64,000 nucleotides of DNA from Epithemia pelagica (GCA_946965045.2 OX337234.1:3782001-3846000), one strand, 5' to 3'; positions 8,497 through 44,074 are shown, counted from the first letter of the stretch. The notes: generated by a model from the sequence alone, not told the origin. Program-made: numbers and translations.

Positions 8497-11400
8497 CTAT
8501 AAGTGGTCATGGAAAACTTCATCTCTCCGAAGGAGACTTGTTTCCGTTCCCTTGGCATTCGGGAATACCGCATCGAGATCCTCCTCGACCGAAACGCCCA
8601 ACCATGCACTCAAGGCAAACCATATCGATTCCCAAGACAGTGTGGGAATCATTCTTCCATTTCCAGCGTTTAATGGACCAGTCAAATCAGCAGGGTATTC
8701 CCCAAATACCTTTCCCCCTTTAATGGCGCCACCCAAGGCGAAATAATGGCCAGCCCAACCTTCGCCGGTCTCATCCTTGTCATTGATGGGCTTCAGCGTG
8801 CGTCCAAATTCGGACAATACCAAGAGTGTCACGTTATTCCATAAGCCAGCTTTCTTGGTATTGTGCACGAAACAATCAATGTATTCGTTAAGATCTTCAA
8901 ACGCTCTGTCCAAATGAGCCTTTGTTCTTGAATGTTGATCCCAACCATCCATTTGAACATAGATCAAGTCACGGTCACTACCTCGCGCACCACGGGTGTC
9001 CATATATTGCACCGCTAGGTTCAGTGATTTGGACCCACACGATTTATCGGGGCGTTTCGCGTTAGCAAACGCATCCGTGAGCCATTCATTATGACTCAAA
9101 GCACGCACAAAGGACGCGGACCACAAATCGCCGAATAGGTTGCTTGATATCTTATTGACGTTGTTGAGTTTCTTCATGGCAGACAAAGGATTGTACGACT
9201 CCGACTCGGGCTTGTCATTGAACACCTGTGGTCCTTCTTGACTCATTACTACAGGCGCATGTCGCGCTGTTTCATTGCCTTTCACTGCGAGGTATAGTTT
9301 GTCCAGCGAAAGTGTTTGGGCATTGTGCCCATAGTCGTTTCGATTAAGAACGTGCGCCAGGCGTGCCAGTACTCCAGATGGGGGACCTTTGTTGTTTGGA
9401 TCAACATTTTGAGCTTCTGTAAGCATCGAGGAGCTATCAAAAAGTTCTGTTGTCGTTACTGTACGCCACGTCTCGCGGTCTGCGAGCTTGTTTATCATAC
9501 CGGCATTCAAGAAAAAGCTTAAATCACCCTGCTTGTAGAGGTTCTGGAGAACTGGTAATTTATAATGAACGGCAAAGCTTTCGCATGCTTGATCTTGTCC
9601 GTGCACATCGATTCCAAGTTTCCGTTCACCCTGATCGAGAGCATTTGCAGCGCGTTCCGCAATGTATTGATCAAGCACTGTGACTCCGTCGTCATTTGTT
9701 CCGATGCATGAATGTGGAACAACCAGATTGTAAGTATCACAACCACCCGCAAGCATTAATACCACGAGTGCTTTGTAAGGCGTTGTTGGCTCAGTTGTCT
9801 TTGGTTCGGTTGTTCTCGTCTCGCTACCCGGCAAAATCGTCCCAGTGCTGTGGAAAGCTGACGATGACGATATTAGCTGCTCCGCTTTGACTATACCAAG
9901 TAGTGGATCAGATTCTCCAGCAACGACATCCTTGATGAGCTCGTGATGTTCCGCGGATAGTCGCCCGCTTGTCATCAGGGTAGCGAGTTCGTCGACAATA
10001 CCACTGGGAGAGCTGGCATCGCTGGGGACATAGACAGCTCTGCTCGACATGTGCTCATATTTCCCTGCAACCCGTGATTTACAAGTCTCCGGGCCAGCCC
10101 AATTGTCAGTCTCTCCAAATCCATCAAAGCATCGGTCAAAACCATACTTTACCATGGCTAAAAGACCATTCATTGCTCCAATGATATGGAAATTCGTGTG
10201 GACTTCCGCTTCCGGCGACAAAAGTCTTTCCACGTTCTCCCCTCTAGGATGGAAATAAGGATTGAAAAAGCCGTAGCTACTCGGGGCTTGATACGCCATC
10301 TGTCCAATCGTTGCCTGCATATCCTTGGAGAATCGCGGGTACGGAAACTGAGGCGTGGGCTGAAACTCCAGATTTCTCATCAAACCTGTCACTTTTAGCA
10401 AAGGTTCTTTCAAAGATCCATGAACGGGGTCGGCGTCTAGTATGAGACTTCGCGCTTCACGGTCAAGAAGGGTCGCAGCAACTGCAGCTTTCAGGTCTCC
10501 GTACGAACCATCACCAAAGATTGTAGTGCTTTCCCCGTGATGATACTCAAAGCGGCCCTTTTGGAAAGCCCACGCAATGGCCCTGACATATCTCAGTGAT
10601 GGGTTACTTGTTCCAAACCGCTGGGCTAAATGAAGCGCCAAGAAGGGGGCGGTATTCTTGTGGTACAAGAAATGATCAATCGCTGCATCAATCTCGTACT
10701 GAGCGTCACGTCGCGTAGGTTCCGCAAGGGACATGAAGTGCACAGGGTTACGGAAGGCAATATCTGTAACTCCTAGGCGCGCCACGGAGAGAACATTCTT
10801 CCGGAGTTGAACAACACCAAATTCGTCCTCAACTTCGAAGATGGTATCTTCAGTAATGGTACCATCGACTGCATGCATAATCACGGATCCAACAGTTACC
10901 GTTCTATACGATCCACCCAAAATATCTGGTGAGTAGGCTCCCACAGTAAGCAACGAAAGAACTTCTTCACGACTGGAGGGCATCGAAGTGAACGCTTGCT
11001 CCTCTGTAACTGTGACGTCGCACATACAGTACCCATCCATAGACATGGAACATCCCTCGTTCATTTCACAGTTAGTGATCAAATTGGTAATTTGATCGCC
11101 CCCAGTATAGTACTCGACTCGGAAGAATGTCTTATTATCTTCTTCTTCATACCCTCTTTCTCGATCTTCGTCCATATCTTCTTCAGGCAGCTCGTGGACA
11201 ACAGCAATCTGACCACTGCTATGAATCTTGGCTTTCAACTGACACGTCGAAAAAGGTGACATCCAATAGTAATAACGGCCTTCGCATGAAGTCCCTTCAC
11301 AATTGCGGATATCCAGTTTTCCTGTGGAGCAGTATGCTTCTCCACTTGCATCGGCACAGCGTGCACCTGCGACGGCCGCTTTTACTCGTTCGCCCCAATA

Positions 11401-14400
11401 ATGTGGTTCGTGGGCATTTGCCAGAGCACCATCAAAGCAACAGGCGGTGGAGGCTACAGGGGTTCTTGGATCCGCACACTTGAAAGCTGTCCCACGACCG
11501 GCAAAGCGGAATCTCTTTTTGATCATTTGAGCATTCTCGTAGTACGTTTGGTGTACACAGGGAAGGGGAACATATTCGTAAAAGACTCCGCCCTCTACCT
11601 GTACCACGCGAATCGTATCTACTGCACATTCGTCTCCAACGCAACCCATGTTCTTTGCCACAGTTACAACGGACGGATAGGTACATTTGCCGCTTTCCTC
11701 GTCGGCATTACATAACAGAGAGTTCAATTCTCCTCTTGGATCGGCCACGAAATGAGCAGTTCGATCATCACTCCCCCAATCCACAGGGTCATCTTGGAGC
11801 TCTGGCAATGGATTGTGTCCCAACACAATGTATTTGGCACCACGTTTCAAAAAGTGCTGGTCTGGACGATCGGCGCAAAGAGGATATCCATCTCCCACAT
11901 AATGCCCACCCAGTCCCATTTTGGGGAACACATCTCGCCACAGCGGTTCAATATCCATGGGATCAATGTGGTTCGAGAAAGGGTCGTCTTTATTTCCACG
12001 GCCATGCTGTTCCTGAAATCCAGTCCACACCCGAGCATATTCCTTTACATCGTCTTTATCAAAGGCCGCAATTGGCTGCCCGTTACCGTTCAGCTTGAAC
12101 GTTCCATCTATGTTGAGTTGATACATTCCAATAGTAAACAGCTTCATCATGACACGGGCAAGATTCTGTAAACACAGAACAAGGCAAAGAAGATTGCAAT
12201 GACAATAAGTGACTCAGAAGGGTGAACGACACGACGCATCCCGTCGTCTTCTTGTGTTGTCTTACCTCATCTGGATAGCCCAAGCCAGCGCTCTCTCGTT
12301 GGCGCCATCGGAACCCCAAGGAACGAGAGTTGAGGTAATTTAACATGTTTCCCATTACCACGCTGTAGACAACTTCTTTGAGAAGCAGCCGATAGTTCCC
12401 AAATGCATTTCGCACAAAGATGTCATAAAATTGGAGCAACGCCTCGGTCCCAATACGAGTGCCACTGTGCACATTGGCCACCTATAATCATAGATCAGGA
12501 GGTGTAAAAGGGAAGATACATTTGAGAAAAAGCCAAAAGCAAGCCGAAAGAACCGTTGGACTAAAAACTCGGAGTGGTCCAGCACATTGAAACATGTGCT
12601 CTCCACTACACACACAGGTAACACGTACCATGATTTGACTGAGCGCCCAGGCCATGCGTTGTCGCAATTGATCCGGTGCCGTGAGAGCGACCGCCATCCA
12701 CACGGTTTGACTGTCCTGCAGGGTATGATTCTGAATGACGGCCATATCGGGTTGATAATAGACATTCATATCAAAGGCACCCCGAAAGACTTCTCCATCA
12801 TTGACCAATCGATTGGCTACTTCGCCGGGACTTCCACAGACAACGATACCGGCTGTGGAATCCATGTGTTTGTGATTGTGATTGTTTCGAGCACTGTGGC
12901 ATCCTTGATGGTAGTGATGATGGCCATGAGCCGCCGAATCGCTTCCGTCCTCATGCTCCGTCGTCTTGCCGTCACCATGGTTGGTACTAAAACTGCTCAG
13001 ATAACACGAGGCTTCATTCTGAAAGGTCCGTGGAACATTGGCGCACAGCGATTGATACAAGGCGCCATCAGATGTGGTACTATTGGGATTGGGTTTGGTT
13101 TGTCCCACCACTTTTTCTCCTCCATCCGGCAAGGGTGTTTCCAACGTATTTTCTTGCAGGACCAGACGCGGATCGTGAATCCAATACTCCGTCGTTTCGT
13201 CGTCGTTGACAAAGCGACCAATGACAATGGCCGGTTCGCCGCCTCCTCCACCCCGTTCGGTCAAGGTCAAGCACGTTGGGTCCTTCAAGGTGGTCACAGT
13301 CAAGAGCCGTTGTCGCGGAGGATCCATGGTTTCATAGTAACTGAGATCCATATCGGCAACACTGTCTCGAGGCAAATTCACGAGCCATTTGGGTGGTAGG
13401 ACGGCTTTATCAAAATGAATTTGGGGATTTCCTTTCATGGACGATCCAAACAAGACGGGACCAATGCATTCGCCTTGGTATTCCAAATAGACGGATCCAC
13501 CCACAAAGTTTTGCGGAGCTTGACAAAATTTGTACCTGTACATGAACATCATTGACAAACAAAAAGAGAGAAAGCACACCAAAGTGTTAGCACCAACGAG
13601 GCAGCAAACAGACCCGCCACAAGCCACCACGAGCAACGATTGGTAGTTGTGGTGTGTATAGTTTTGGATGATACGTACGATCCATCGGGAAAGACGAGGG
13701 CACTTTGTTTCCGTCCCTTGCGCAAGACTTGAATGGGCCCTTGGACCAGGGTATGGACGACATTGTGCACGGCCAAGACGCGGTAGGGATGCGTCGTCAA
13801 GGTGGACACTTCCAAACTGGCACCGAGATACAAGTTGGTAAAGGCAAAGTTGCGGTAGGCGGTAAATTCCTGACAGGCATGTGTCACCAAACCAATGGGC
13901 GACGAGGTGGCATGACGGGCCGTGGCGCGTTTCCGCCAAAAGACGCGATGATAGGACGGTTGAATGCGACTGGCATTGACTTGCCATTCCATCCACGAGG
14001 CCAAGACCGGGTCGCCCAGGCCCGGTTCCGATTCGTGGACCTTCCACCATTGTTTCGAAACGGCGGGACTGGCAAAGAATTGGTCGCGATGGGCCGTCAA
14101 AAATTCCAATTCACTCGGATTGGTCCCAAACGTGGCTTGTTCCAAAAAGCGGGCATAAATCGTCGCACCATAGTGGGGATCATCCGTGGCCACGGCATCC
14201 GGATGCGAATGGGGCCGTTTGGCAAAGTGTGCCAATTGCGGCGAGGTGGACAAGGATCGAGGGACCAAGGCATAGTACAGTGGCAGAGCGTCGGGATCGT
14301 CCGTGTGGGGCGGTGGCGGCAAGAGGGCTGGTACAGCAATGGTACAATACCGTCGATCTCGTCGATCGGAATCGTTATCATCATCGTCGTCGTCTTCCAC

Positions 14401-15885
14401 TTCGTATTCGTCAATTTCATAACAAACGATACTGCGCAATTGGGGTTGTCCATGGCCGGACCGTTGTCGATAGGGTTCCCAACAATGTCCTTGATAGGAC
14501 CGGGCAATGGGATTCCAAATGGACCGTCCATCCGTCTGTACGAGCATGCACAGAGTATCAATCGCACAGGTAATCAATTCCATGGTCCAATAGGCTTCCT
14601 CGTCCCATTGTTGCGCAATGGTCTTGTTGCTAAAGACTTGCACGGCAATCCCGAGGGGCACCACGGCCGTGCCCCGTCGCAATTCCTCTTGGAGTGTGGC
14701 CGGCAAGGCTGGAGACGACGAGGGCGACATGGCTTGAACGAGCAAATCACTGCAATTCAATCGTGGGGGTGGCAAGGGTGTCGGTGCCGCACTGGGTGAC
14801 ACGGAGGGTTGCACACTGACGGACGGTGTTTGCGTCGGACTCATACTAACGGTCGGATAATGCGTTGGTGGCACAGACGGCGTTTGCGTTGGTCCTTGAC
14901 TCGGCGTCGCCGACGGCACCAGGGAGACGGTTGGTACCGGAGAGGGTGCGGGAGACACGGTCGGAGCAGCCGTGGTGGGAACGGCTGGCAGCAACTCATC
15001 ATCTGTTTCGCCTTCCTCCAGAGGCGTTTCCCGTCGCGACAATAGCCATAGCAATCCCACCATGGGCAAGACCAAAAAACAAAAGAGCATGCAGGCCAAT
15101 CGTCGACGTCGTTGTTGCCGTCGCGCTTCACTGTGCCATGCCACACGCGACAAGTACGCCTCGTGGGGCAAACCACTTCCGGCGGCCGCTGCAGCGGCTG
15201 CGGCTGCCACGGCCGACGGCGTCTTGCCTTGCAAGCCCAACATAAATTCGGTTTCTCGTCGCGCCGCACCACTGGCATCTTCTTCATCCTCGCCATCGCC
15301 ATCCGCAGCAGCGCCACCAATGCCGACCATGCCCAAATCCATAATTTTGGGGGCCGCCGGTTGTGTTTGGGGATCGGTCGAGCTGTTGCTAGTCGCCGCT
15401 TGGTGTTGCATGGCGGCTGCTAGGGCATGTTCGTCACGCGGTGGAAACAAGTGCGACTCGGCGGCATCGTAAAAATGCGATTCCGATGTCGTGCTCTTGG
15501 CATTCCAATAATTGGGACCGTAAATGGTCGATGCTGTCGTTGATGTTGTCGTCCTTGGATGATTCGACCGAGTGGTTGTTGGTGGTGAGGATGGTAGTAG
15601 CATCGAGGAGGGTTGATCCGGATCGGGTGGCGAATGATCATCGTCACCGCCTGGACTGGTGCTGGGATTCAAGGCACGATCCCAGGTAAAGAGCCATTCG
15701 GCTCCGGTTTCCGAGGGTGCCGGAGGCATGATTTGCTGGTCATGTTGTTGTTGTGGTGGTGCGGCAGCTTGCTGTTGTTGTTCGTCATCGCCCCCTCGAG
15801 GTACCAAGGGTTCTTTTTCGGGTTGTTCCAATTCCGAAGGAGGTTGTGGATGCGGTTGCTGTTGTGGTTGTTGCAGAGGATCCAT
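8497..15885 (-). CDS. Membrane-anchored DUF1800-DUF1501 fusion protein, paralog 1 (about 2332 aa; exons 15885-13679, 13535-12629, 12481-12266, 12165-8497)
   Basis: GT-AG junctions give one continuous frame. TM helix LACMLFCFLVLPMVGLLWLL. DUF1800-type motifs ARFLEQATFG, DQLRQRMAWALSQIMV, PDENLARVMMKLFTIG, HKNTAPF, SNPS, LKEPLLK. DUF1501-type motifs YKALVVLMLAGGCD, GWDQH, SEFGRT, IPTLSWE. Confidence 0.88.
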
Positions 15886-17295: not shown

Positions 17296-17675
17296 CCTGT
17301 AACGCGTCTTTGTCAGCACCACCCTTATCATCCCTACCGTTTTCGCGGTCTCGTTCTGCCTCGTCTTCCAGCACCATCGTCTCAAGGCCTTGTACACATA
17401 CCTTACACCGAGGGTGGAGTCATGAGACAGACACCCACACTGTGGCAAGCCAAAAGACTCTGTTGGTTGATTGCCATAGTTCTTGGAATAGCTTCAACAG
17501 ACATTTGTCACATGTCCCCGTGTTGGCATGTTCAGCTTTTCGCTGTCATACATTTTGGTGTCATTGTACACTTTAGACATTTGCCGCATGTCCCCCCGTG
17601 TTTGCATGTTCAGCGTATCGCTGTCAAACATTTTTATTTGCCTCATGTCCCCATTGCGTACAATTTGATGCACGT

Positions 17676-17844
17676 TGAAAAGGGCGCGACCTAATGGAGA
17701 CTAGCCATAGGGCTGACGTATAGGGTCGACGTCACCTTGCCCAACCAGCCTCACACTCTGGATGACGCACTACTTGCATATCTTTTAGGAACGTACGAAC
17801 TAGGTAATCTTCTATCATAATTTTACGAATACATACCCTTTTCA
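17676..17844 (+). repeat. 5' LTR
   Basis: TG...CA ends with a 9-bp terminal inverted repeat; identical to the 3' LTR except one base. Confidence 0.96.
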
Positions 17845-25655: not shown

Positions 25656-25725
25656 CACGTTTGGCGTTTGCCCCCAAGAGAGGCCACTTGGCGATTTGCT
25701 CATAAGGGGATTCTGTCAAGATTGA

Positions 25726-25885
25726 TTGTGGGAGGCAAGCTTTCCCTCCCTTTTGGATAGGATCTCTCGCGATGAAACATTCATTTGCATGTTTCACGAA
25801 AAGCCATTGTGGGAGGCAAGTTTTCCCTCCCTTTTGGAGGGGATCGCATGGAAAGAAAAATTCATTTTCATGTTTCACATAAAGG
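25726..25885. repeat. Two-copy ~81-bp tandem repeat (also at about 32306-32465)
   Basis: TGTGGGAGGCAAG(C/T)TTTCCCTCCCTTTTGGA...TTCATTT.CATGTTTCAC occurs twice in succession. Confidence 0.75.
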
Positions 25886-26914
25886 CCTCTTCACATTCTG
25901 CTCATGGAGGTTCTCTTTCTATATTGATCGGGGTTCAAGACATAACAAGCAATCCATAAGCAACTTTGAATCAAAACAATGAAACAACGACGAAGCTTAC
26001 TGGTTTCTCCGTCACCCTGAATCCTGTCTGTTGTGCTCTCGAAGGAAACTCTACGCATATGGCGCAACTAAACGACGAGCCAGATCCTGCTCTCTCTCTC
26101 TCTCTCTCTCTCTCTCTTTATCGGCATGGTACTAGCAGCCTTTAGAGATCAAAGGTCCGGTCTGACGACACGCCTGTGTAGAGTACCTCTCGTGCTCCAC
26201 TCCGTCATTCTGACCGTCCTTCTCGTATATGTAATCGAATGTCTTGAACCGACCCGCTATACAGTGAGGGAAACAGCACCATAGCAACGCTTGAGATATC
26301 ATGTGCGCAATTCCAATACTCTAGCCTGACAATATAGAGCGGACTCCATTGGATAACGAGCATCACAACTCCGCTCGAGAACATGTGCAACCACCAACGG
26401 CGCCTGGAGTTACGGAGTCATGCGAACAGCCGCCACAGAAAGTCAACGAGCATTCCCAGGCACTATCATTGGTGCGCTTCCACCCCAGTACCTATTGCGG
26501 GCTTTGTTTCCATAGCGTGCCATTGTTGAGAGTGGAAAGGGACTTCAGGTTTTGGGGCACCCGAAAATCCGTGACATAAAATGTGGGACAAGACGTGTCG
26601 ATCGGCTCGCAGAGCTACGCCTGTCGTGCTACGTTTCTAAATAATCCAAAAAAGATACTAAGTAAAATTGAAATCATAGCAAACGGGAATCGGCGAGCCA
26701 TTAACAAACATGTCTGTAATCGCCGGCCAGTGGGTGAGCTGCCTTCTCGAGCGAGCCGAGACGCTGGAGGGCAATAGAGGTGCAAAGTCTCTGATCTGTT
26801 TCTTCTCTCGCTCCATACTGAGAGCACTACTCGTGCACACCAATCAACAAGTCGCATGGGACTCGAACGTTGGTGTTTAGAGTTTAGAATAAAGAGTCTC
26901 TCATCCTTATTGGT

Positions 26915-29226
26915 CTAGTTTCGAAAGACTTGCGCTTGACGAAGCATTTCGGTCCCCGTTCGTTCGCTATTGGGCAATACATACTCACTGCAGTCGTTTC
27001 GACTCACACCAAGCCACTCACAAATCGGCATGTAGATGGATTCCCAGGACAAGGTGGGAATCAATCGCCCCCGTCCCACATTGAGAGGACTGTCGGCCGT
27101 CAAATCCAATGGATACTGACCAAGAGCCTTGCCTCCATTCAACGCTCCACCCATGGCAAAGGAATGACCGGCCCATCCGTGATCAGACCCCGAGTTTGTA
27201 TTGGGTGTGAGTGTTCGCCCAAATTCAGAAACGACCAATAGCGTTGTCTTGTCCCACAGCCCCTTGTCCTTGAGGTTTTCAACGTAGCATGCCAAGGCCT
27301 CGTTCAATTCTTGAAACCCTGTGCTGAGCCGCGACTTGACGTCCGAGTGGTGATCCCAATTACCCGTCGAAACATAAAAGAGGTCACGATCCACTCCGCG
27401 GTCTTTTCTGGTTTCCATCATTCGAACAACCATGTTAAGCTTGGCAGAACCACAACTTTTCTTCAACTGAATATCACGCAAGGAATCTTGCAAGAACGCA
27501 TTCTCTGCCATGGCACGCTGAAACGGTTCGGACCAAAATTCACCAAAAAGGCTACTCGTGGCATGGTTCAATCCGTTCAAACGATCGAAATAGGTCTTCG
27601 GGTCGAACTGTTCTGTGCGTGGCTTGGCGTTGAATGCCGTTGGACCTCGTTCGCTCATGACCAGTGGAGACTCCGAGTCTGTCGTTTCCCCGTTCACGGC
27701 AGGGTACAAATTGTTGATAGAAATACTTTGAGCTTGGAACCCATACGTCTCATTGTTCAGTGCATGGGCAAGACGACCCAAGATTCCGGTTCCAAGCACT
27801 TCTTGGTACGGATCTACGGTCTGTGCTTCTTTTCGCATTGCATTATGGGCAAAAAGCTGCGATACGGTCATGGCCTCAAAGTTTGCCTTTGTCGGTGCCA
27901 TATTGATCAAGCCCGTGTTGAAGAACATGCTCAAATCCCCCTGGTTGTAGAGTTCCTGCAAAAGTGACAGTTTCTTGTGGATTGCAAACTTGGAGCAGGG
28001 CTGACGGTCCACGTCAATAGTCAGCTGACGTTCGCTTTCTTTGAGTCCAATCGTTCCCCGTTCGGCCACATACTGCTCCAAAACGGTCAATCCCATTGGA
28101 TTGGTTTGATTGCAAGTGTGGGGGACGACCAAATTGTATGAGTCGTACCCTCCTGAAAGCATGAGCACCACCAACGCCTTGTATGGTCTCTCTGTTGGAA
28201 CAACCTCTTTCTTGTGTCTTCTCGCCTTTCCAGTTTTGCTGACAATACCGTTGCTGTGGAACTCACTGGAACCAACAATCAACTGTTGCGATTGCATTGC
28301 AGCCGATTGTGGGTTCTCGGCAGTGTCCACGGCTTCTCCAATCATGCGCCGAAGTTTCTCATTCAGTCGACCGCTTGTCATAATTGTCGCTAATTCGTCC
28401 ACAATTTGTGCAGTTGTGCTTCCTTCCGTAGGTGAGAATCCAGGATACCCTGACATGTTGACAAATTGTCCTGCCATCCTCCATCGGCAGTCAGAATATT
28501 GCGACCAGTTGGACGTTTCGCCAAAACCACCAAAGCAGCGGTCTAATCCGTACTTCATCATTGCCAACAGACCATTCATTGTTCCCAGAATGGTAGGTGT
28601 GGAATGGATTTGAGCTTCTGGAGACACCAAACCAGCGTTCGCAACGACTCCACTGGGCTGATACTCGGGAAGGAAAAAGGAAAAGATGGACGGCGACTCG
28701 TAGACTTTTTGACCGATTGCCGCTTGTAGGTCTCTTTTGAATCGAAGAAACGGAAACTCTGGCGTTGACTGAAACTCAAGGTTCCTCATAACCGCTAGAA
28801 CCTTGAGTAGCGGCTCCTTCAATGAACCATACGCCGGATCTGTTCCCAATACCGCACTCCGTGCTTCTCGGTCTAGAAAAATAGCAGCAACCGTAGCAGC
28901 AAGATCACCATGTTGTCTAGATCCAAAAGATACGTCGAAATTCCCTCTGTTATACGTGTAGGCTCCTGTTCGGAACGCCTCAGCAATCACTTGCACGTAT
29001 CTCGGTGACGGGTTACTGATTCCGAATCGTTGGGCAAGACGAGTTGCGAGAAACGGAGCAGTATTCTTATGATACAAGTAGTGGTCGATGGCCGCGTCCG
29101 TCTCGTACTGCGCATCGCGCAAGGTAGGCTCAGAAAGCGAAATAAAGTGAACTGGGTTCCTGAAGGAAATGTTTGTTCCGACAATGCGAACCACCGAACG
29201 AACATTCTTACGCAAGTGCTCCACAC
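26915..29226 (-). pseudogene. 5'-truncated copy of the C-terminal 769 aa of DUF1800-DUF1501 paralog 2
   Basis: Open frame nearly identical to 33479-35790 (roughly 14 aa differences by eye); begins mid-exon at the junction with repeat Z. Confidence 0.9.
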
Positions 29227-32665: not shown

Positions 32666-32699
<34 letters not shown>

Positions 32700-33478
32700 A
32701 TCGGCATGGTACTAGCAGCCTTTAGAGATCAAAGGTCCGGTCTGACGACACGCCTGTGTAGAGTACCTCTCGTGCTCCACTCCGTCATTCTGACCGTCCT
32801 TCTCGTATATGTAATCGAATGTCTTGAACCGACCCGCTATACAGTGAGGGAAACAGCACCATAGCAACGCTTGAGATATCATGTGCGCAATTCCAATACT
32901 CTAGCCTGACAATATAGAGCGGACTCCATTGGATAACGAGCATCACAACTCCGCTCGAGAACATGTGCAACCACCAACGGCGCCTGGAGTTACGGAGTCA
33001 TGCGAACAGCCGCCACAGAAAGTCAACGAGCATTCCCAGGCACTATCATTTGGTGCGCTTCCGCTGCTGGGCCTATCGCGGGCCATTGTTGAAAGGCTGA
33101 CTTTGGACTTTTGTGCACCCGAAAATCCGTAACAGAAAATGTGGGACCAGAAGTGTCGAGCGGCTCGCAGCGCTACGCCTGCCGTGCTGCCTTACTAAGT
33201 AGTCCGAAAAGGATATTAAGTAAAAGTTTGATCCGCGCAAACGGGAATCGGCGAGACCAATACAAACATGTCAGGAATCGCCGGCCAGTGGATGAGCTGC
33301 CTTTTCGCGCGAGCCGAGACGCTCGAAACCAATAGAGTTTTACAAAGTCCCTTATCTTTTTCCTACAATATCCGGACAATCCGGACCTCTCATGGTGCAC
33401 GAGTCGCATGGGACTCGAACGGGAGTGTTTTGTGTTTTGAAAAGTCTCTCGTCCTTGTTATTTGGATGGTTGGTCTAC

Positions 33479-36400
33479 CTAGTTTCGAAAGACTTGCGCT
33501 TGACGAAGCATTTCGGTCCCCGTTCGTTCGCTATTGGGCAATACATACTCACTGCAGTCGTTTCGACTCACACCGAGCCACTCACAAATTGGCATGTAGA
33601 TGGATTCCCAGGACAAGGTGGGAATCAATCGCCCCCGCCCCACATTGAGAGGACTATCGGCCGTCAAATCCAATGGATACTGACCAAGAGCCTTGCCTCC
33701 ATTCAACGCTCCACCCATGGCAAAGGAATGGCCGGCCCATCCGTGATCAGACCCCGAGTTTGTATTGGGTGTGAGTGTTCGACCAAACTCAGAAACGACC
33801 AATAGCGTTGTCTTGTCCCACAGCCCCTTGTCCTTGAGGTTTTCAACGTAGCATGCCAAGGCCTCGTTCAATTCTTGAAACCCTGTGCTGAGCCGCGACT
33901 TGACGTCCGAGTGGTGATCCCAATTACCCGTCGAAACATAAAAGAGGTCACGATCCACTCCGCGGTCTTTTCTGGTTTCCATCATTCGAACAACCATGTT
34001 AAGCTTGGCAGAACCACAACTTTTCTTCAACTGAATATCTCGCAAGGAATCTTCCAAGAACGCATTCTCTGCCATGGCACGCTGAAACGAATCGGACCAA
34101 AATTCACCAAAAAGGCTACTCGTGGCATGGTTCAATCCGTTCAGACGATCGAAATACGTCTTCGGATCGAACTGTTCTGTGCGTGGCTTGGCGTTGAATG
34201 CCGTTGGACCTCGTTCGCTCATGACCAGTGGAGACTCCGAGTCTGACGTTTCCCCGTTCACGGCAGGGTACAAGTTGTTGATGGAAATACTTTGAGCTTG
34301 GAACCCATACGTCTCATTGTTCAGTGCATGGGCAAGACGACCCAAGATTCCGGTTCCAAGCACTTCTTGATACGGATCTACGGTCTGTGCTTCTTTTCGC
34401 ATTGCATTATGGGCAAAAAGCTGCGATACGGTCATGGCCTCAAAGTTTGTCTTTGTAGGTGCCATATTGATCAAGCCCGTGTTGAAGAACATGCTCAAAT
34501 CCCCCTGGTTGTAGAGTTCCTGCAAAAGTGCCAGTTTCTTGTGGATTGCAAACTTGGAGCAGGGTTGACGGTCCACGTCAATAGTCAGCTGACGTTCGCT
34601 CTCTTTGAGTCCAATCGTGCCCCGTTCGGCCACATACTGCTCCAAAACGGTCAATCCCATTGGATTGGTTTGATTGCAAGTGTGGGGGACAACCAAATTG
34701 TATGAGTCGTACCCTCCTGAAAGCATGAGCACCACCAACGCCTTGTATGTTCTTTCAGTGGGAACAACCTCTTTCTTGTGTCTTCTAGCCTTTCCAGTTT
34801 TGCTGACAATACCGTTGCTGTGGAACTCACTGGAACCAACAATCAACTGTTGCGATTGCATTGCAGCCGCTTGTGGGTTCTCGGCAGTGTCCACGGCTTC
34901 TCCAATCATGCGCCGAAGTTCCCCATTCAGTCGACCGCTTGTCATAATTGTCGCCAATTCGTCTACAATTTGTGCCGTTGTGCTTCCTTCCGTAGGTGAG
35001 AATCCAGGATACCCTGACATGTTGACAAATTGTCCTGCCATCCTCCATCGGCAGTCAGAATATTGCGACCAGTTGGAGGTTTCGCCAAAACCACCAAAGC
35101 AACGGTCTAGTCCGTACTTCATCATTGCCAACAGACCATTCATTGTTCCCAAAATGGTAGGTGTGGAATGGATTTGAGCTTCTGGAGACACCAAACCAGC
35201 GTTCGCAACGACTCCACTGGGCTGATACTCGGGAAGGAAGAAGGAAAAGATAGACGGCGACTCGTAGACTATTTGACCGATTGCTGCTTGTAGGTCTCTT
35301 TTGAATCGAAGAAAAGGAAACTCTGGCGTTGACTGAAACTTAAGGTTCCTCATGACCGCTAGAACCTTGAGTAGCGGCTCCTTCAATGAACCATACGCCG
35401 GGTCTGTTCCCAATACCGCACTCCTTGCTTCTCGGTCTAGAAAAATAGCAGCAACCGTAGCAGCAAGATCACCATGTTGTCCAGATCCAAACGATACGTC
35501 GAAATTCCCTCTGTCGTACGTGTAGGCTCCTGTTCGGAACGCCTCAGCAATCACTTGCACGTATCTCGGTGACGGGTTACTGATTCCGAATCGTTGGGCA
35601 AGACGAGTTGCAAGAAACGGGGCAGTATTCTTATGATACAAGTAGTGATCGATGGCCGCGTCCGTCTCGTACTGCGCATCGCGCAAGGTAGGCTCAGAAA
35701 GCGAAATAAAGTGAACTGGGTTCCTGAAGGAAATGTTTGTTCCGACAATGCGAACCACCGAACGAACATTCTTACGCAAGTGCTCCACACCGAATTCATC
35801 TGTGAGCTCAAAGATGGTTTCGGGAGAGTACGATTCTAGTTGGCCTTGAGTTGAATGGACTTTGACGCTGTTCGGCAATTGTGTGATCGAATAGTTTCCA
35901 TCCAGTATGTTGGGATGGAACGAACCGACTACAAGTTCCGAGAGAATCTCATCTTTTGTGGGTTCCGAAAAGAATACTTGCTGATTATCGACGATCACGT
36001 TGCACATGCAGTAGCCATCCTCTGCCACGTTACAATCAGGAATATCATCACATCGATTGATGAGGTCTGTAACTTCCTCCTTTCCAGACTGAAAGGCAAC
36101 TCTAAAGAAAGTTTTGTTGTCCTCTTCCTCTTGTCCCATCTCTCTCTCCTGCGAACTGTCTTCGTCAGGTACTGAGTGCACAATGGCAATCTTTCCCGCG
36201 TTGAAAGTGTCAAACTTGGCCTTGATGAAGCACTGCGTACTCTCTGCGAACCAAAAGAAGGGATGGTGTGGACCAGTACAGGAATTCCCTTCGCAATTTG
36301 ATATTCTGAGTTGTTCGGTCGATGTACACATGGGAATTCCGTCATCAGAACATCGTTCTTCTGCAGTCGACGCGAGAACTCGCTCTCCCCAGTAGACCTG

Positions 36401-39400
36401 TGAAGCATTAGCTCTACCTCCATCAAAGCAACATGCCGTAGAAGCCACTGCAGTTCGAGGATCGGCACACATGTACCTGGTGAATGCCAAGCCCTTCCCT
36501 CGATTTCGTTGCTTGATTTTGCGGGGATTCTGTACAAATGCATGGTAAACACATGGCGGTGGAACGTATTCGTAAAAGATTCCACCTTCAATTTGAACAA
36601 CACGAAGCATGTCTACCTGGCATTCTTCACCGGAACAATCGATGTTGTCTTGCAATATGACCGTCCCTGGATATGTACAGGAAGAGTCCTCTGGATCGGT
36701 GTCCTCTTTTTGACAAAGAATGGAGTTCAATTCACCCTCTGGATCTGCGACAAACAGGTTGGCGAGTTTGCCCCATTGATTTTCCGGTTGGAGCTCAGGA
36801 AACGGACTGGATCCCAACAGGATGTATTTTGCACCTTGCTTCAGAAAGTGCTGTCGTGGAAGATCTGCGCAAAGAGGGTAACCGTCACCAATGTACTTTT
36901 GGTTCAAACCCATTTTCGGAAAGATGTCTCTCGTCGAGACTCTTATTTTCATTGGATCAACTCGGTTGTCGGCAGCGTCATCCTTGTTGCCACGCGCTTC
37001 TTGCCTTTCAAAACCAGTCCAAACCCGAGAATACTCCATGATATCATCATTGGTGTACGCTCGAATCGGATGTCCATTGGCGTCCAAAGTTAAGCTACCA
37101 TCACTGTTCAGCTCATGCAGACCAATCGTGAACAGTTGCATTACTTCTCTGGCAAAGTTCTGCGTTTTGAAATCATTGAGTGAGATGGATATTCATGACT
37201 GACAAAGAAGAGGATCCAGTGCTACAACATACCTCGTCGGGGTGTTCCACAACACCAACGTTCCGTCGCCAGTTGTAGCCGAGCGATTTTGAGCCAAGGT
37301 AAGTCAACATTCTAGCCATCAAAACGCTGTATGAAACTTCTTTGAGGACATCACGGTAGTTACCAAAGGCGTGTCGAACGAAAATATCGTAATAGTGCAC
37401 AAAGGCTTCTGTTCGAGTGGATTGGTTGGCATCAAAGTTGACAATCTGATGGCGAACAAAATCGCGATGATAGTGAGTCAAACAATAATATATGCATATA
37501 CAAGAGCACGAACGTACGTCACAAAGCTGTACCTACCAAAATCTGGCTCAGTGCCCACGCCATGCGTTGACGCAGCTGGTCTGGAGCTCTAAGGGCAGTG
37601 GTCAACCAGATAGTTTCTTTGTCCTTCTTGTGGTTCCCGCCGGTGTTGTTCCATTCCGTCGCGATCCCAAAGGAGCCGCGCAATCGTTCTCCGCCCAATT
37701 GTAGATCGTTCGCAACCTCACCAGGACTACCACACACAACAACTCCGGCTCCGGTCTGTCCTCTAGAGGACAGGGAACTGCTGCTGAAGTATTGTCGAAC
37801 AGACGGCAATCTTTGCAATGGCTGGTTGGCCAAGTCGTTGTAAAAATCAATCGTTTCACCAAACCGCCCCATATCAAACAGCACATTATCGTGGTTATCT
37901 TGCCATTGTTGCATGTCGTGGTGAGATGGAAAGGTGAGCCACACCTTTCCACTTTGTGCAAACTCGGAAATCTTGCCTGCTCCACCGGGATGTAAATCCA
38001 ACCATTCTGTAAAGTCATAGACCTGGCCATGATTTGGATGAACATTGTGCCAGCAAGTGTCGCTGACCCATACTTCAAAGTCTTTTGCTGTCAGATCGGT
38101 CGAATTGCATCGACCAAAATTAGCATGTGCAGGCAAGAAAATGTCCCGAATGAGGTCGGTACCATCGCTGTGTGAGGCGATTAACCTTCCCAAGACTTCG
38201 TTCGTTTGCGAACCCAACGTTTGGCAGATTTGCTCGTTGCTCCCAGAGACTTGCATCCATCGAGACCGTGCCATCGGCTGGCAGGGCGGGGGAACTTCGG
38301 TGTCGTCTTGGATGCGCAACCCATCGACTGCATAGATGTAGCGAGGTGTCTTAGAGTCAACAGTAACGTTATACAACACTTCGAGGGTCGTCGCATTCAA
38401 GTTCAGCTCAAACGACTGTTGATCACGGTGATTGGATGATCCACAAACTTGACTGTCGTCACTAAGGTAACACGAGTCTTCATTTTGCCACGTCCTCGCA
38501 ACGTTCGCACACCTGGCTTGATAATTCAGATTCTCGCTGTATGTTTGCTCCACAACTGTCCCGCCACCATCCGGTAATGGATTCGACAACGAATTTTCTT
38601 GTAACACAAAGCGAGGATCATGAATCCAGTATTCACCCGAGCTTTGCTCTACTCCGAGAACAATGGGTACAGGTCCCCCATTGGAGTACTCGAATTGCGA
38701 GCAAATCTCATCTGTTAGTGGGTTTGTGGTCAGGAGGCGTTGTACACTCTTCTCTGAATCTTTGCTGGTATAATAATCCACATCCAAAGGCTGCGTGGCG
38801 TTTCCTGACAAGACAACTTGTATGGATGGCACCACCGGGTTCTCTGAATCTTGGACCATGTCCATTAATTGAATTGGTGGATTACCAGAAAAGGATCCAA
38901 ACTGGACTGGCCGCTTGCACGAATCATCTTGAGGATGGATCAGCCATACGCGACCATTCAGGAACGCTTCTGGAGCTTGACAAATTTCATAGCTGGTATA
39001 ATGCCAAACACACAAGACAGGGTAAGTCACAGCAAACAACAACACTAGCCTAGAAAACGAACTTCTAGAGTCCACCACTCACCTTCCATCGCGAAATATA
39101 AGCGATTGGGCATTGTTGGGACTCGTATGGAAGCGAATGGGCAATGTGGTCGGCAATACCGTGAGAACCGTACCGTCGATACTCAAGAGACGGTACTGTC
39201 CGTCACTCGAAGTGGACAGTTCCAACGTTTTGAGCGTGTGTGGCTCGACCAGGGCAAATTTTCGATATGTGGTTCCGGCCTGACAGGGATGCGTGACGGT
39301 CCCAGTCGGCGAAGAGCTTGCAAACCGCGCCGTGGCATGCCGTCGATAAAATTCCCGATGCAAGGTTGGTGGAACAGTCGTCATTTGTTCGCCGATCCAT

Positions 39401-42400
39401 TCCGCCATGACTTGCAGTTGAATGTCACTTTCGGTGAGGCTCGCGCTTTCGCCTGCGAGTCCATCCGACTTGATTTCGTGTCGTTCTAATAAATCTCGCA
39501 AATCGGCTCGGGTGGTACCAAAGGTGCCTTGTTCCAAAAAGCGTGCGTATTCATCTCGACGTCGTTGCAGTGGGTTGTCCTCCCACGGCAATTTTCGAAG
39601 CGTCACGGCAAAATACCAGGATTCGTCCGGGTGGATTGCACTCAAGGACCGCCGTTGTCTCGTGGCACCCCCTCCTATAGGTACCGTAGTGGTCAGGCTG
39701 TCTTTGTTGTTGTCGATAGTAGGGTCGGTCAAGGCAATGGTGCACGTTTGTGGATTGCAATTGAGGGGAACGCGCGATGGCGAGGTATAGGCTTCCCAGG
39801 CATGGCCATGGTACGATCGGGCCAAGGGAATCCACGAGGAAGAGGAAAAGGACGAGCCATTGGTGGTGGACAACACCTGGCCCTTGGTGCGGACCAGCAG
39901 ACACAACCGATTGGCGGGACAGGTTCGCACCACGAGTGAAAATGGCGTGCTCGCATTTTGGTTTTCGGCCATGACCAAGAGGGCCAGATCCGAGCCCTCC
40001 AAGGCCACGGTACAATCCAAGGGAGTTTCGGCCGTGACATTGGCCACGGATAATTGAATGACGGAAAAGTCCTCGGCCAATTCCTCCCACTCCGTACCCA
40101 ACCCACCGTCCGTCACACTTTGCAAATTGTCGGGGTCGTTGCCATTGGGATTGGCAAAAAAGACAATGGAAAGGACAATGAGAGTAGTACACAAGGCCAC
40201 GACCAAGAATCCCAACAACCAAAATCGAGCTTGTCGTTGGCGGGAAAGAGCGTGTTCCTGCTGATAATAGTCATTGTTGTTGTCCTGGTAGTTTCCGGAC
40301 CATCCCGCCCAGCCCAGTCGCTCCGAGAGGGTTCTGGTCGAGTTGGACCAGCACGGTCGCCGCCACCATGCCTTGCCAGATGCACCATTCGTGGTGGAGC
40401 TTGGGAGGGTGGTGCTGGTCGTCCAGACGGATTCGTTAATGCCATAATAGTCTTCGGGTACCGTGACGGGATCGGCCAAGTCCACGGCAATCGGTCGTTC
40501 GTGTTGTCGCAACAGCGCTTGAGGGGAGGAGACCAATGCGGCTGTCGTGGGGGGCGTGTCGTTGCGACTGTCGGTTGGGCTGAGACTGCGCAATCGAATG
40601 CCCTGTCCTCGTTTGCTGGTGCGGCTCATGGTACTGCTGTTGGAGGTTGTGGAGGATGCCATTGTGGTGGTGGTGGTCGGATTGCCCCAGCCAAAGAGTG
40701 AAAAGGAGGGAGAGAGAAAGGAAAAAAAGTAGGGAGACGTGGCATTGTGGGGCGTGGAGGAGGATTCGGCCGTGCGATTCTGGTCGTGTTTGGAGGAGTT
40801 GTGCTTGCCCCTCTTGTGATAATACTTTTTCTGTTTTCTCTTGTTCTGTTTGGTGGCCTTGCGGCCTGGCCACGAGGCTGTCAAGGCACTGCTAGCCTCA
40901 TCATCGTCGTCATAATCGGGATGATCGTGTTCGTCGGGTTCATCCTGCAATTGTTCCACGCTGCCTGTTTCTCCCTGATGATGATAGTAGTAGTCTCGAT
41001 CGTTGCGACTGCGCGTGTCATTGCTGTCTTCGTCATCTTGATAAATCATGATGGAGGATTCGACATCGTCCTTGTTCCAAAAGAGCAAGTCGGAATTTTG
41101 TTCGACAAAATTCGTCGTTGCGGGTTGGGTGGACGACGTTTGGTTCTTGCTGGTGACACTGGTCGTGGGCGTGGGTGGACTCCGGCTCGTGGTGTGGTTC
41201 TTGTTTGTTGTGCGTTTGCGGCGACTCTTGTTGTTTGATTTGGGCGGCGGTGGAGGAGGAGGAGGTGGCGGTGCCACACCACAAAAGGGTAAGGAGGAAA
41301 GAACGTTTTGCGTTGTCATGGCGGTCGCGTCTCCCAGCAAAAAGTCTTGGGTCGTTGTATCACCCTGCGTCGTTTCCGTCATGCTACTGACACTGGTGGA
41401 ACCATCGACCGAAAGGAGCGAATGGAGGGGTGGTCGTCGTGGGCCCCCTCGAGACTGTTCTTGTGGTTGTTGTTGATGTAAGAGTGCCGCCGCCAAGACG
41501 TGCGATTGGGTACGACGAGGAGGAGGCCGTGTGGAAGCTTTGGACTTGGACTTTGGTTGTTGGTCCTTGGCTGCTGCTTTGGATGGTGTGGGGGTGCGTC
41601 GGGGTACTGATGCATCCTCTCGGGGATGGGGACTGACGGATTGCAATCGCGTCGTCGAATAGGGCAATTCCATGTTGAAATCCAATCCACTGCTAATATC
41701 ATCATCGTCGTCACCATCCTGTTCCTGTTGGTTGTCTCGCAACAAGTAGCGTCGACCGGCTGGATTCGGCATGCTGTTGTGGTTGTTGTTGTTGTTTGCG
41801 TTGTTGTTGAGGTTCTTTGGATGATGCTTGGCACCCCAGCCGGACGGCAACCATCGTTTTTGGTTGGAGGGTCCTGCTCCACCCGCCGTGGCACTGGCCT
41901 GCGAGGAGGTGGCCACGCCATCAAAGACGGACGAAGAGGAATCCAAACTGGTGGTTTCATCCCACTGGGGATGAGAGTGCTGTGGTGGTGCGGAGGAGTA
42001 TGGCACGAGCAAGGACGGTGGGAGACGAGCATGTGTGGTGGGACCGACGCCTGCCGCCGCCACGACGGACGACGAGAGAGAACAAGAGGAAGAGGCGACG
42101 GACGAGGGCGAGGGTGGGACTTGCCAACTGGTTTCCTTGGTGACGGCATGATAATAGTAATGCTGACCGGAATGCGGATCGACCGCTTCCATCCACCACG
42201 AACCAGTGTCGTCCTGGTTGTTGTCGGGAGTTGTGTGTTGCGATTTGGAGTCTGGTTCGTCTTGACGTGATTGGGGTGGTCGGGTGCTGCTTGGATGCTG
42301 CAGTGCCTGTCGACTCGTCCTGGTGGCCGATTTCGTATGGGACACATTCGTACTGTGGGTTCGCACGGCCGCATCGGCAAAGGCATAGCGTGGTGACGGC

Positions 42401-42408
42401 TGTGACAT
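33479..42408 (-). CDS. WW-domain, membrane-anchored DUF1800-DUF1501 fusion with cytochrome-b5-like insert, paralog 2 (about 2891 aa; exons 42408-39083, 38992-37537, 37445-37233, 37159-33479)
   Basis: GT-AG junctions give one continuous frame; introns at the same positions as paralog 1. WW: WMEAVDPHSGQHYYYHAVTKETSWQVP. TM: FWLLGFLVVALCTTLIVLSIVFFA. b5-like: VYDFTEWLDLHPGG. PDENFAREVMQLFTIG; LFAHN; NWDHH; SEFGRTLTPNTNSGSDHGWAG. Confidence 0.9.
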
Positions 42409-44074
42409 GGTTGGAATTAAACTGGTTGGACTTGGTTCGTTCTCAAGCTAAGACCAAGGCGGAGTGTTTCTCGGTTTGCGTTCGTGTTTTTTGTGTGAGT
42501 GTGTCTTTTGGTTTGGGTTCAAGGATGAGGATGATGAGGATGAACGGTTCGAGAGTTTGGTCCATTCCCTTCACACACAAACACACGCCAAACAAGAAGC
42601 GAAACGGAGCAGCAGGAATCGATCGATGGAGGTGCAATGGCGATCCAAAGCAATCACACCACAGTCTCTTTCGTAGATGAGCTCTTTTTCGTGTGGGATT
42701 TGTTCGGCACCTCTTTGGCTATAGCGGATTGGATATACGAGAGAGACTGAGAATCCAGAACCACCACGCCGTTCGTTCCGTTCCGCATGCAACTCGAGCA
42801 ACACACAAACTCTCCCCTTTGGTTGTTGTTGTTGGTTCTGTTGCGTTCTCTCGTTTTGAGTCTCGTCTCTCTCGTCGTCGATTGCCTTTCTTCCTGTTTT
42901 TCTCATGACGAGGTCGGTGCGCGTCTTGACAAGAGTCATCGCGCCGGTCAGCTTTTACTTAGAATCCCCAGTCATTTCGGGTTGGAAAAAAGTCCCCCAT
43001 GGAAAAATTTCACCTACACTACAATGCAAAAGTTGCATGTGCCAAATGTCCTGTCCGTAAAATGCAAAATGCTCTTGAGCGCAATGCGCGGTCATTGTAC
43101 CAGTATTGAAGGCGGACTCGTGTGCAGGCCAAAGTTTGTTATGCGAGACGCGTGCCACAAGACCAAAAATCCCGTCGTTGCAAAAGTCAGCCCAGTCCGG
43201 CAAAGCGCAAAAGGGAGAAATTTGGGGCCGACGCTCACAAATTGATGTGTCTGTCGTGAAATGAAAGACAAGGGAACACGCCAACAATAGATCTATAGAA
43301 GATGGAATCATGAACGTACGAGTACGAGTATGGATGGACACTCTTGGTCCTCTTTCTCCCTGTCTCCAAACGGGGTCTACCCATGAAATCGTTTGTTCGC
43401 AGGGAGAGTTGGTTGGTGAATAGTCAATCGTTGTTTTGCTTTGCTTTGCTTTGCTTTGCTCCAACCGCCCAAAGCTCCCCATGGAATGACATGTATACGG
43501 TTGTCGCAGTACGTACAAGTCGGTGGTTCTTTCGTCATGCAGGTACGCGCAGTCGCCTCGGCAAGAAGAAGAAGAAGCCGCCAGGGCGATGGATACCATT
43601 TGGGGTTTTTGGTTGTTCCGAAATACACTACTAGGAGTACCTAGCTGGGTAAAAACATGAATGTTGCAGATCCAAACGTCGTCATCTTGGCTTTCTATTA
43701 GCGACAACAACAAGGGAACGGAGCGGCATGGCGTAACGATGGAGGGGGGCTACCTATACTCCAAGAGGAGTCTATGGAGTATATACCTCCTCTACCCCCT
43801 ACCAATCCGAATGGTCTGTACGTCGTAAGTTTATGGTTGAGGACTCATCTTCAACGTCAGTCACGGTTCGGACTTGCCCGTTTGTGGTGGGGCGGCGAGA
43901 GCGAGACAGCAACACGCAGCAAGGGAGTGTCTCGCTGCATCAACCAACCCATCACACATCCCCTTGAAACAACGATCCTCGTCTTGTGTCCTTGTCGTTG
44001 GTTGCGATTTGAGTGCATCTCTCGTTTGCCTATAAAGAAGACAGACAGTACAGGAACCAACCACACCAAACAAA

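Follow-up and report, generated by a model that had tools for sequence, protein, structure and literature searches.

A gene on the minus strand of a 64,000-nt stretch of the Epithemia pelagica genome (GCA_946965045.2, OX337234.1:3782001-3846000; hereafter the window) encodes a protein of 2891 amino acids (aa) in which a bacterial gene pair, DUF1800 and DUF1501, is fused in one chain and preceded by a membrane helix and a long tail bearing a WW domain. The reading favoured here, to which we give even chances as a whole, is that the chain combines an extracytosolic metallo-esterase module with a glycan-binding partner. The locus would then be expressed and encode a single-pass membrane glycoprotein of type II, of which the N-terminal 725 residues (WW, a run of ten prolines and low-complexity sequence) would face the cytosol, while the C-terminal ~2140 residues would be displayed at the cell surface or in the secretory/endocytic lumen as a single-chain version of the periplasmic DUF1800 + DUF1501 pair. 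DUF1501 would be the catalytic metalloenzyme, most likely cleaving or transferring phosphate- or sulfate-type esters that are carried by an extracellular substrate, probably a glycan, and DUF1800 would be its obligate partner, probably binding or presenting that substrate. A cytochrome-b5-like module with two histidines, housed in DUF1800, would probably be heme-bound and provide redox input or control, and the WW tail could recruit cytosolic partners for trafficking, turnover or signalling.

The gene is assembled from four open reading frames (ORFs) that join into one frame, giving a coding sequence of 8676 nt with a single, terminal stop codon and no frameshift or internal stop across 2891 codons (coordinates in Table 1). 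An earlier note, made from the sequence of the window, had described an intact four-exon gene of this length; the length was reproduced exactly, and three GT..AG introns were read. Exon 1 encodes the cytosolic tail, the transmembrane (TM) helix, the juxtamembrane region, the first DUF1800 segment (A) and the start of a first insert; exon 2 continues with the remainder of that insert, including the b5-like module, and the start of the second DUF1800 segment (B). The DUF1800 C-terminus and DUF1501 share the 1226 uninterrupted codons of exon 4. DUF1501 is thus in frame, as had been claimed, and the DUF1800-DUF1501 fusion is independent of splicing.

Read evidence was taken from Logan contigs of four public runs of one study (X1-X4), placed on positions 36900-42700. 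In contigs of run X2, all three introns are removed exactly as predicted; a single 734-nt contig covers exons 4-3-2, and the WW-coding part is covered by another (42074-42385). The introns are retained in contigs of runs X1, X3 and X4. The simplest reading of the X2 joints is a spliced transcript of the predicted form, although the record of X2 does not identify it as RNA. Readthrough of the TGA stop codon at 39079-39081 was also considered and rejected, as both the sequence and the X2 joint place this codon in an intron. The same in-frame TGA between the first two ORFs, together with the fact that no run is recorded as RNA, could suggest that separate genes have been joined artificially, or that the DUF part is a bacterial contaminant or a defunct relic. 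However, the intron that holds the TGA is spliced out in the X2 contigs along with the other two, the uninterrupted exon 4 and the undamaged frame do not fit a relic or a false join, and the locus, with spliceosomal introns and ~12 paralogs, is part of a 1.73-Mb contig. An artefact of either kind is therefore very improbable.

The N-terminal part of the protein agrees with the earlier description of a WW domain and ~700 aa of low-complexity sequence before a single TM helix. The WW domain scores 32.3 bits against Pfam PF00397 (gathering cut-off 26.9; E 9.9e-8), and its signature, W..YYYH..T.ETSWQVP, retains both tryptophans (about 22 residues apart) and the terminal proline. Residues 1-725 are rich in Ser, Thr and Pro, of low complexity, and contain 3 Cys. 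The helix that follows is the sole Kyte-Doolittle peak in the whole protein (maximum 2.8). It is flanked by RQRQAR on the N-terminal side and by the acidic residues of NPNGNDPDN on the C-terminal side, and 43 of the 47 Cys lie C-terminal to it. Both the positive-inside rule and this Cys distribution fit the type II anchoring that had been proposed, so that a cytosolic tail and extracytosolic bacterial-type modules are predicted with good confidence. The WW domain was absent from a paralog in the window and from the Seminavis, Hondaea, Triparma and Symbiodinium proteins that were scanned, and is lineage- or paralog-specific. The suggested coupling of the fused module to a WW domain consequently holds for the studied gene but is not general. 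A signalling role for the WW tail is conceivable, though rather doubtful.

The evidence for an enzyme comes from DUF1501. The domain matches Pfam PF07394 with 110.5 bits, and its AlphaFold2 model has a mean confidence (pLDDT) of 92. With this model, Foldseek returned solely members of the alkaline phosphatase superfamily, mostly sulfatases, at low TM-scores; the probability for the sulfatases is 1.0. The exhaustive aligner VIA placed Xac NPP first (Z 18.7, root-mean-square deviation (rmsd) 3.4 Å over 246 residues), followed by ENPP7/1/4/6 and PafA (Z 17.4) and then by sulfatases with Z of about 16. On the strength of the model, DUF1501 is assigned an alkaline-phosphatase-superfamily fold, closest to NPP. 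The relation is one of fold resemblance only, as the Thr nucleophile and the two Asp-His metal pairs of NPP/ENPP were not found in DUF1501. A PDB sequence search with exon 4 gave no match, and a DUF1501 profile search for solved relatives gave only a marginal ENPP4 motif match, in which 'ITSDHGMT' of ENPP4 is paired with 'SEFGRT' of DUF1501. A formylglycine sulfatase was rejected, as the C/S-x-P-x-R pattern occurs neither in the DUF1501 domain nor in the whole ectodomain.

Nine residues are invariant in 65 aligned DUF1501 sequences, namely H128, D292, H294, R338, T339, N343, D349, H350 and R386 (domain numbering), and two more, D29 and R388, are nearly so. The studied gene holds all eleven, and catalytic competence of this copy is predicted as somewhat the better supported outcome. 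Ser127 of the LFSHSD motif and the Thr that follows 'EP' were both considered as conserved nucleophiles and rejected, since neither column is conserved family-wide.

Comparison with paralogs of the same genome shows what the loss of this site looks like. The studied gene and four paralogs keep the entire DUF1501 site, while five others have lost H128, D349-H350 and R386 and retain the invariants of the third DUF1800 segment (C), so that DUF1800 apparently has a role independent of DUF1501 catalysis. One of the five is the paralog in the window, which is ~51% identical to the studied gene in exon 4. It has the same type II layout, with RRQQRRRR before a helix at aa 264-283 and a tail of 260 aa, lacks both the WW domain and the b5-like module, and carries a His-rich linker (HGHHHYHQGCH..HNHKH) at the b5 position. 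Its DUF1501 site (P0011, 8497-12150) reads H128S, D349G, H350E and R386N, which makes it probably a pseudoenzyme. By the same residues, the family would comprise probable enzymes and probable pseudoenzymes.

The degenerate copies also raise the alternative that the studied protein is a non-catalytic receptor or adhesin, whose ectodomain binds a glycan, a metal or a bacterial product, with DUF1501 as a pseudoenzyme and the WW tail transmitting the signal or sorting the protein. The five paralogs that keep DUF1800 segment C show that function within the family does not require the metal site; the cytosolic tail of 725 aa is unusually long and bears a WW domain; and Ser127, which is invariant in bacteria, is Ala in the studied gene. 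However, the studied copy keeps every other invariant Asp, His and Arg, unlike the degenerate paralogs, and residue 127 varies (A, S, G, T or D) among eukaryotic copies that are otherwise intact, which suggests that it need not be the nucleophile. A purely binding protein is accordingly judged unlikely, and a metalloenzyme is preferred.

The partner domain, DUF1800, was delimited with a profile built from 57 bacterial DUF1800 proteins, which scored 270 bits over three segments of the studied protein; the match to Pfam DUF1800 (PF08811) is spread over exons 2, 3 and 4, with 111 bits in exon 4. Segments A and B are separated by insert 1 (aa 1025-1556, ~530 aa) and segments B and C by insert 2, a Cys-rich stretch with 17 Cys in aa 1801-2100 in which no recognised family was found. 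The earlier description of a DUF1800 split by long Cys-rich inserts therefore stands for the two inserts, of which the second is the Cys-rich one. Among 52 positions that are invariant in bacterial DUF1800, five are changed (G201A, H298R, I343A, V359I and V456I), as judged by eye on the profile alignment; the invariants of segment B were tabulated independently as well. ESM Atlas feature searches with the juxtamembrane region, insert 1 and insert 2 returned only the protein's own DUF1800 cluster. A model of a bacterial DUF1800 protein (P0241, L001:4064-5875) has a pLDDT of 92, and no solved analogue was found for it by Foldseek (best E 0.28) or by VIA-align against 48,161 chains (best Z 4.1). 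Judged by this model, the PDB so far offers no precedent for the DUF1800 fold. Weak matches to phycobilisome linkers recurred (Z 3.0-3.6 over about 125-154 residues) but were too weak to be accepted as a fold assignment; a similarity of DUF1800 proteins to ApcE is noted in a 2026 paper (PMC12981691).

The b5-like module lies inside insert 1, because the bacterial profile maps segments A and B to either side of it. The domain order given in the heading of the earlier note, with the module between DUF1800 and DUF1501, has to be abandoned. The match to Cyt-b5 (PF00173) scores 26.3 bits (cut-off 23.7) and covers profile positions 19-43. His1443, in an HPGG motif, and His1467, ~24 residues further on, are invariant in nine aligned family members, including that of Symbiodinium, and the module occupies the same insert position in all nine. 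From these sequence features, heme binding appears likely.

Conservation of both histidines at a fixed position could also mean that the protein is a heme-coupled redox enzyme, in which the b5-like heme exchanges electrons with the DUF1501 metal centre and the reaction is oxidative or reductive, not hydrolytic, on substrates such as glycans or cell-surface Fe/Cu. Such an enzyme would have a counterpart in the Planctomycetes-Verrucomicrobia-Chlamydiae (PVC) bacteria, where PSCyt (cytochrome c) + DUF1501 modules have been proposed to transport electrons (PMC3542564, PMC5615132), and the twin-arginine translocation (Tat) signal of bacterial DUF1501 proteins would suggest a cofactor that is loaded in the cytoplasm. 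However, no heme motif occurs in the nearest bacterial DUF1800 partners, whose invariants are D/E/N/Q/R without a Cys/His cluster; in Seminavis, Hondaea and Triparma the DUF1501 site is kept in proteins that have no b5 module; every structural neighbour of DUF1501 is a hydrolase or transferase; and an extracytosolic electron donor is not evident. Redox chemistry as the main activity is thus improbable, and ester hydrolysis or transfer, with the heme in a supporting role, remains the preferred reading.

The closest bacterial DUF1501 proteins are ~30-33% identical and belong to Planctomycetes, Verrucomicrobia and Pseudomonadota. In a Planctomycete and in a Pseudomonadota metagenome-assembled genome, the DUF1501 gene lies directly downstream of the DUF1800 gene on the same strand, with a gap of 18-123 nt. 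The statement that the two are adjacent, separate genes in bacteria was thus borne out in both genomes, and the bacterial order is the order within the fusion. An operon of DUF1800 and DUF1501 has been predicted before, and in some species it is located next to bacterial chitin synthases (PMC5122149). In a FastTree phylogeny of 193 DUF1501 domains with a narrow bacterial sampling, a branch with a support of 100 separates 44 bacterial-side from 149 eukaryote-type sequences, and all five named bacterial sequences are among the 44. A Tat-like RR motif was found in 41 of the 44 and in 4 of the 149. The studied gene has no Tat signal, DUF1501 being internal to the fusion; this is expected of a eukaryotic version and is no argument against homology. 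The DUF1501 tree fits one old acquisition from bacteria, and a bacterial origin through ancient transfer is very probable, although no donor can be named from so narrow a sampling.

The fusion is not confined to this locus. Fused DUF1800 + DUF1501 proteins were found in Fragilaria, Seminavis, Nitzschia, Epithemia, Triparma, Hondaea, Symbiodinium and Hemistasia and on many marine metagenome contigs; the search with exon 4 returned fused proteins of up to 2135 aa, which is the length window of that search. Some 11 further paralogs, 51-65% identical, lie on megabase contigs of apparently the same assembly, except for one of them (P0009), which is on a 4.3-kb Logan contig. Ten DUF1800 proteins have been described in Emiliania huxleyi (PMC7563939). 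The architecture is thus old and shared across the family in many marine protists, and did not arise at this locus. Of the earlier proposal that a horizontally acquired two-gene module was fused here, the bacterial pair and its origin are upheld by gene order and tree, but the fusion cannot be placed in this gene or genome.

The fusion also bears on function. By the 'Rosetta-stone' argument, it suggests that bacterial DUF1800 and DUF1501 work as a complex. Bacterial DUF1800 clusters in the ESM Atlas often carry Ricin-B, CHRD, TSP3, PKD/TIG or Fn3_assoc domains, one bacterial DUF1501 cluster has an F5/8-type-C domain, and two eukaryotic members contain a C-type lectin or Laminin_G_3 domain. Such accessory modules make glycans a likely target. 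Ester-hydrolase chemistry on glycans is nevertheless put forward only tentatively.

Several observations weigh against an extracytosolic metallo-esterase with a glycan-binding partner. No catalytic nucleophile was found, as no Ser or Thr column is conserved across the family. DUF1501 has no TFPNH-like motif, and 'EF' replaces the canonical 'DH' pair of NPP. Ser127, invariant in 45/45 bacterial sequences, is Ala in the studied gene and in most diatom-type copies. With DUF1800 having no solved analogue, its proposed binding role comes only from the associations with accessory domains. The Cyt-b5 match spans only 25 of 74 profile positions, and many members with an intact DUF1501 site have no b5-like module. 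The splice joints come from a run that is not recorded as RNA, and contigs cannot establish one full-length transcript or its 5' end.

Compared with the bacterial DUF1800/DUF1501 pair, the diatom protein has the same domains in the same order and nearly all invariants of both, and the location is alike, the bacterial pair being periplasmic and the diatom modules predicted to be extracytosolic. It differs in being one polypeptide instead of two, with a type II anchor in place of the Tat signal, the two long DUF1800 inserts (one with the b5-like module), the added 725-aa cytosolic tail with its WW domain, spliceosomal introns and the change of Ser127 to Ala. In PVC bacteria, DUF1501 proteins with a Tat signal are paired with PSCyt/PSD1 partners that have cytochrome c motifs and bear carbohydrate-binding modules; the abundance of PSCyt-encoding genes differs between lake layers, which the authors link to the availability of oxygen and the complexity of carbohydrates (PMC3542564, PMC5615132). 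These PSCyt1/2-PSD1 + DUF1501 systems of Planctomycetes and Verrucomicrobia resemble the diatom protein in having a large partner with a heme motif and often carbohydrate-binding modules. In the diatom, however, the partner is DUF1800 and the heme module is of the b5 type (His/His) and not a CxxCH cytochrome c.

The likeness to NPP/ENPP and PafA consists of the structural match (Z 17.2-18.7; rmsd ~3.5 Å over ~245 residues, or 4.5 Å over 274 for PafA) and of a similar succession of Asp/His motifs in the sequence; ENPPs, too, are ecto-enzymes of type II. Sequence identity is only 12-15%, the Thr nucleophile motif is missing from DUF1501 and 'DH' has become 'EF'. Conversely, DUF1501 has an extra GSDH motif and invariant Arg residues, and would need a DUF1800 partner, which NPPs do not have. 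The S1 formylglycine sulfatases share the superfamily fold, as the top Foldseek matches and VIA scores of about 16 indicate, but differ by the motif that is absent from the diatom ectodomain.

In the literature searched (DUF names, Pfam/InterPro accessions, diatom), no functional study of either domain was found and the eukaryotic fusion is undescribed, so that the possibility of an already characterised architecture, raised in the earlier note, did not materialise. NCBIfam has no model for DUF1800 or DUF1501, and the fused homologs appear in databases only as uncharacterised proteins. Word-limited searches gave 7969 DUF1800 and 2639 DUF1501 relatives; both families are abundant in marine and soil bacteria, and neither has a known function. 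That the fusion is conserved in diatoms, bolidophytes, labyrinthulids, dinoflagellates and diplonemids strongly supports one functional unit, and the conserved b5-type insert, a parallel to the cytochrome c partners that DUF1501 has in Planctomycetes, speaks for an activity linked to heme. In this diatom the family is expanded to ~12 receptor-like ecto-proteins with active-looking and degenerate members, for which cell-surface nutrient scavenging, remodelling of cell-wall or extracellular-polymer (EPS) glycans and sensing of bacteria are candidate roles. Through tagging and knockout, the studied gene makes an open question of bacterial genomics approachable in a eukaryote. A bolder proposal, which is a long shot, is a new class of extracytoplasmic enzyme, in which a DUF1501 metal centre with the alkaline-phosphatase fold acts only together with DUF1800, a large helical protein of novel fold, and a heme module (b5 in the diatom, cytochrome c in PVC bacteria) in the redox-assisted processing of phosphorylated or sulfated glycans. 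Diatoms would have converted this enzyme into a family of transmembrane receptor-enzymes, some paralogs being active and others pseudoenzymes, connected to the cytosol by WW tails. If true, it would provide a function for the DUF1800, DUF1501 and PSCyt genes that bacteria have by the many thousands.

Table 1. Features of the studied gene and related copies; positions are counted from the first letter of the window.
Feature	Position	Strand	Description	Evidence
Whole gene	33479..42408	-	4 exons, 2891-aa product	Read junctions and spliced contigs
Exon 1	39083..42408	-	aa 1-1108 and two bases of codon 1109	Joint 38992>39083, run X2
WW domain	42115..42198	-	aa 71-98	Pfam PF00397; X2 contig
Pro10 run	41242..41271	-	aa 380-389, in the S/T/P-rich tail (aa 1-725)	Sequence
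TM helix	40156..40227	-	aa 728-751, single	Kyte-Doolittle
DUF1800 segment A	39337..39552	-	aa 953-1024, profile positions 45-100	Bacterial profile
Intron 1	38993..39082	-	90 nt, GT..AG, holds in-frame TGA	Skipped in X2 contig
Exon 2	37537..38992	-	aa 1109/1110-1594	ORF reading, Pfam, X2 contigs
b5-like module	37819..38121	-	~aa 1400-1500; His1443 (HPGG), His1467	Pfam PF00173
DUF1800 segment B	36890..37650	-	aa 1557-1755, profile positions 109-310, spans introns 2 and 3	Bacterial profile, 168.5 bits
Intron 2	37446..37536	-	91 nt, GT..AG	Sequence and X2 joint 37445>37537
Exon 3	37233..37445	-	aa 1595-1665, DUF1800 core	ORF reading, Pfam, X2 contigs
Intron 3	37160..37232	-	73 nt, GT..AG	Sequence and X2 joint 37159>37233
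Exon 4	33479..37159	-	aa 1666-2891 and stop; remaining DUF1800 and DUF1501, one ORF	ORF, Pfam
DUF1800 insert 2	35684..36889	-	aa 1756-2157, ~400 aa, Cys-rich	Bacterial profile
DUF1800 segment C	34877..35683	-	aa 2158-2426, profile positions 314-577	Bacterial profile, 92 bits
DUF1501	33482..34744	-	aa 2471-2891 (start from about aa 2455)	Pfam, AlphaFold2 model, invariants
In-window paralog 1	8497..15885	-	~51% identical in exon 4	Sequence comparison
Truncated recent duplicate	25656..29226	-		94% nt identity to 32239-35790

Further observations concern the bacterial neighbourhood and the variation of the gene. In Planctomycetes bacterium CA13 (L001:302-2653, minus strand), a protein with animal-heme-peroxidase and dockerin domains is encoded upstream of the DUF1800-DUF1501 pair, and a type II secretion gene set lies downstream. 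Contigs of runs X3 and X4, which come from another sample, show many single-nucleotide polymorphisms (SNPs) relative to the studied gene, with in-frame length variants: a 39-nt skip in insert 1 (38583-38623) and changes of +6, -3 and +3 nt in the low-complexity tail at 41697, 41772 and 42112. The SNPs and length variants look like frame-preserving allelic or strain variation. A back-joint from 41475 to 40661 with five extra letters (TTGAT) is common to contigs of X1, X2 and X3, and several contig ends are loose within the low-complexity tail of exon 1 (40661-41475). A structural variant in exon 1, or an ambiguous assembly there, may explain the back-joint.

The 3.6-kb duplicate spans the last 769 codons of the gene and 1.2 kb of its 3' flank. 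Its ORF (26915-29224) is intact, 98% identical in amino acids to the last 769 aa, and keeps the key DUF1501 residues, and the sequence upstream of it is unrelated and stop-rich. Either this is a truncated copy of recent origin or it belongs to a chimeric gene. Two LTR-like (long terminal repeat) copies of 245 bp, at 17432-17676 and 32000-32244, are 99% identical and bracket a gag-pol region together with the truncated duplicate. The second copy overlaps the duplicated segment by 6 nt where the latter starts (32239), an overlap that hints at a link between the duplication and a retroelement. An 81-bp unit, repeated ~1.9 times, is present in the 3' flank of both the gene (32308-32461) and the truncated duplicate (25725-25878).

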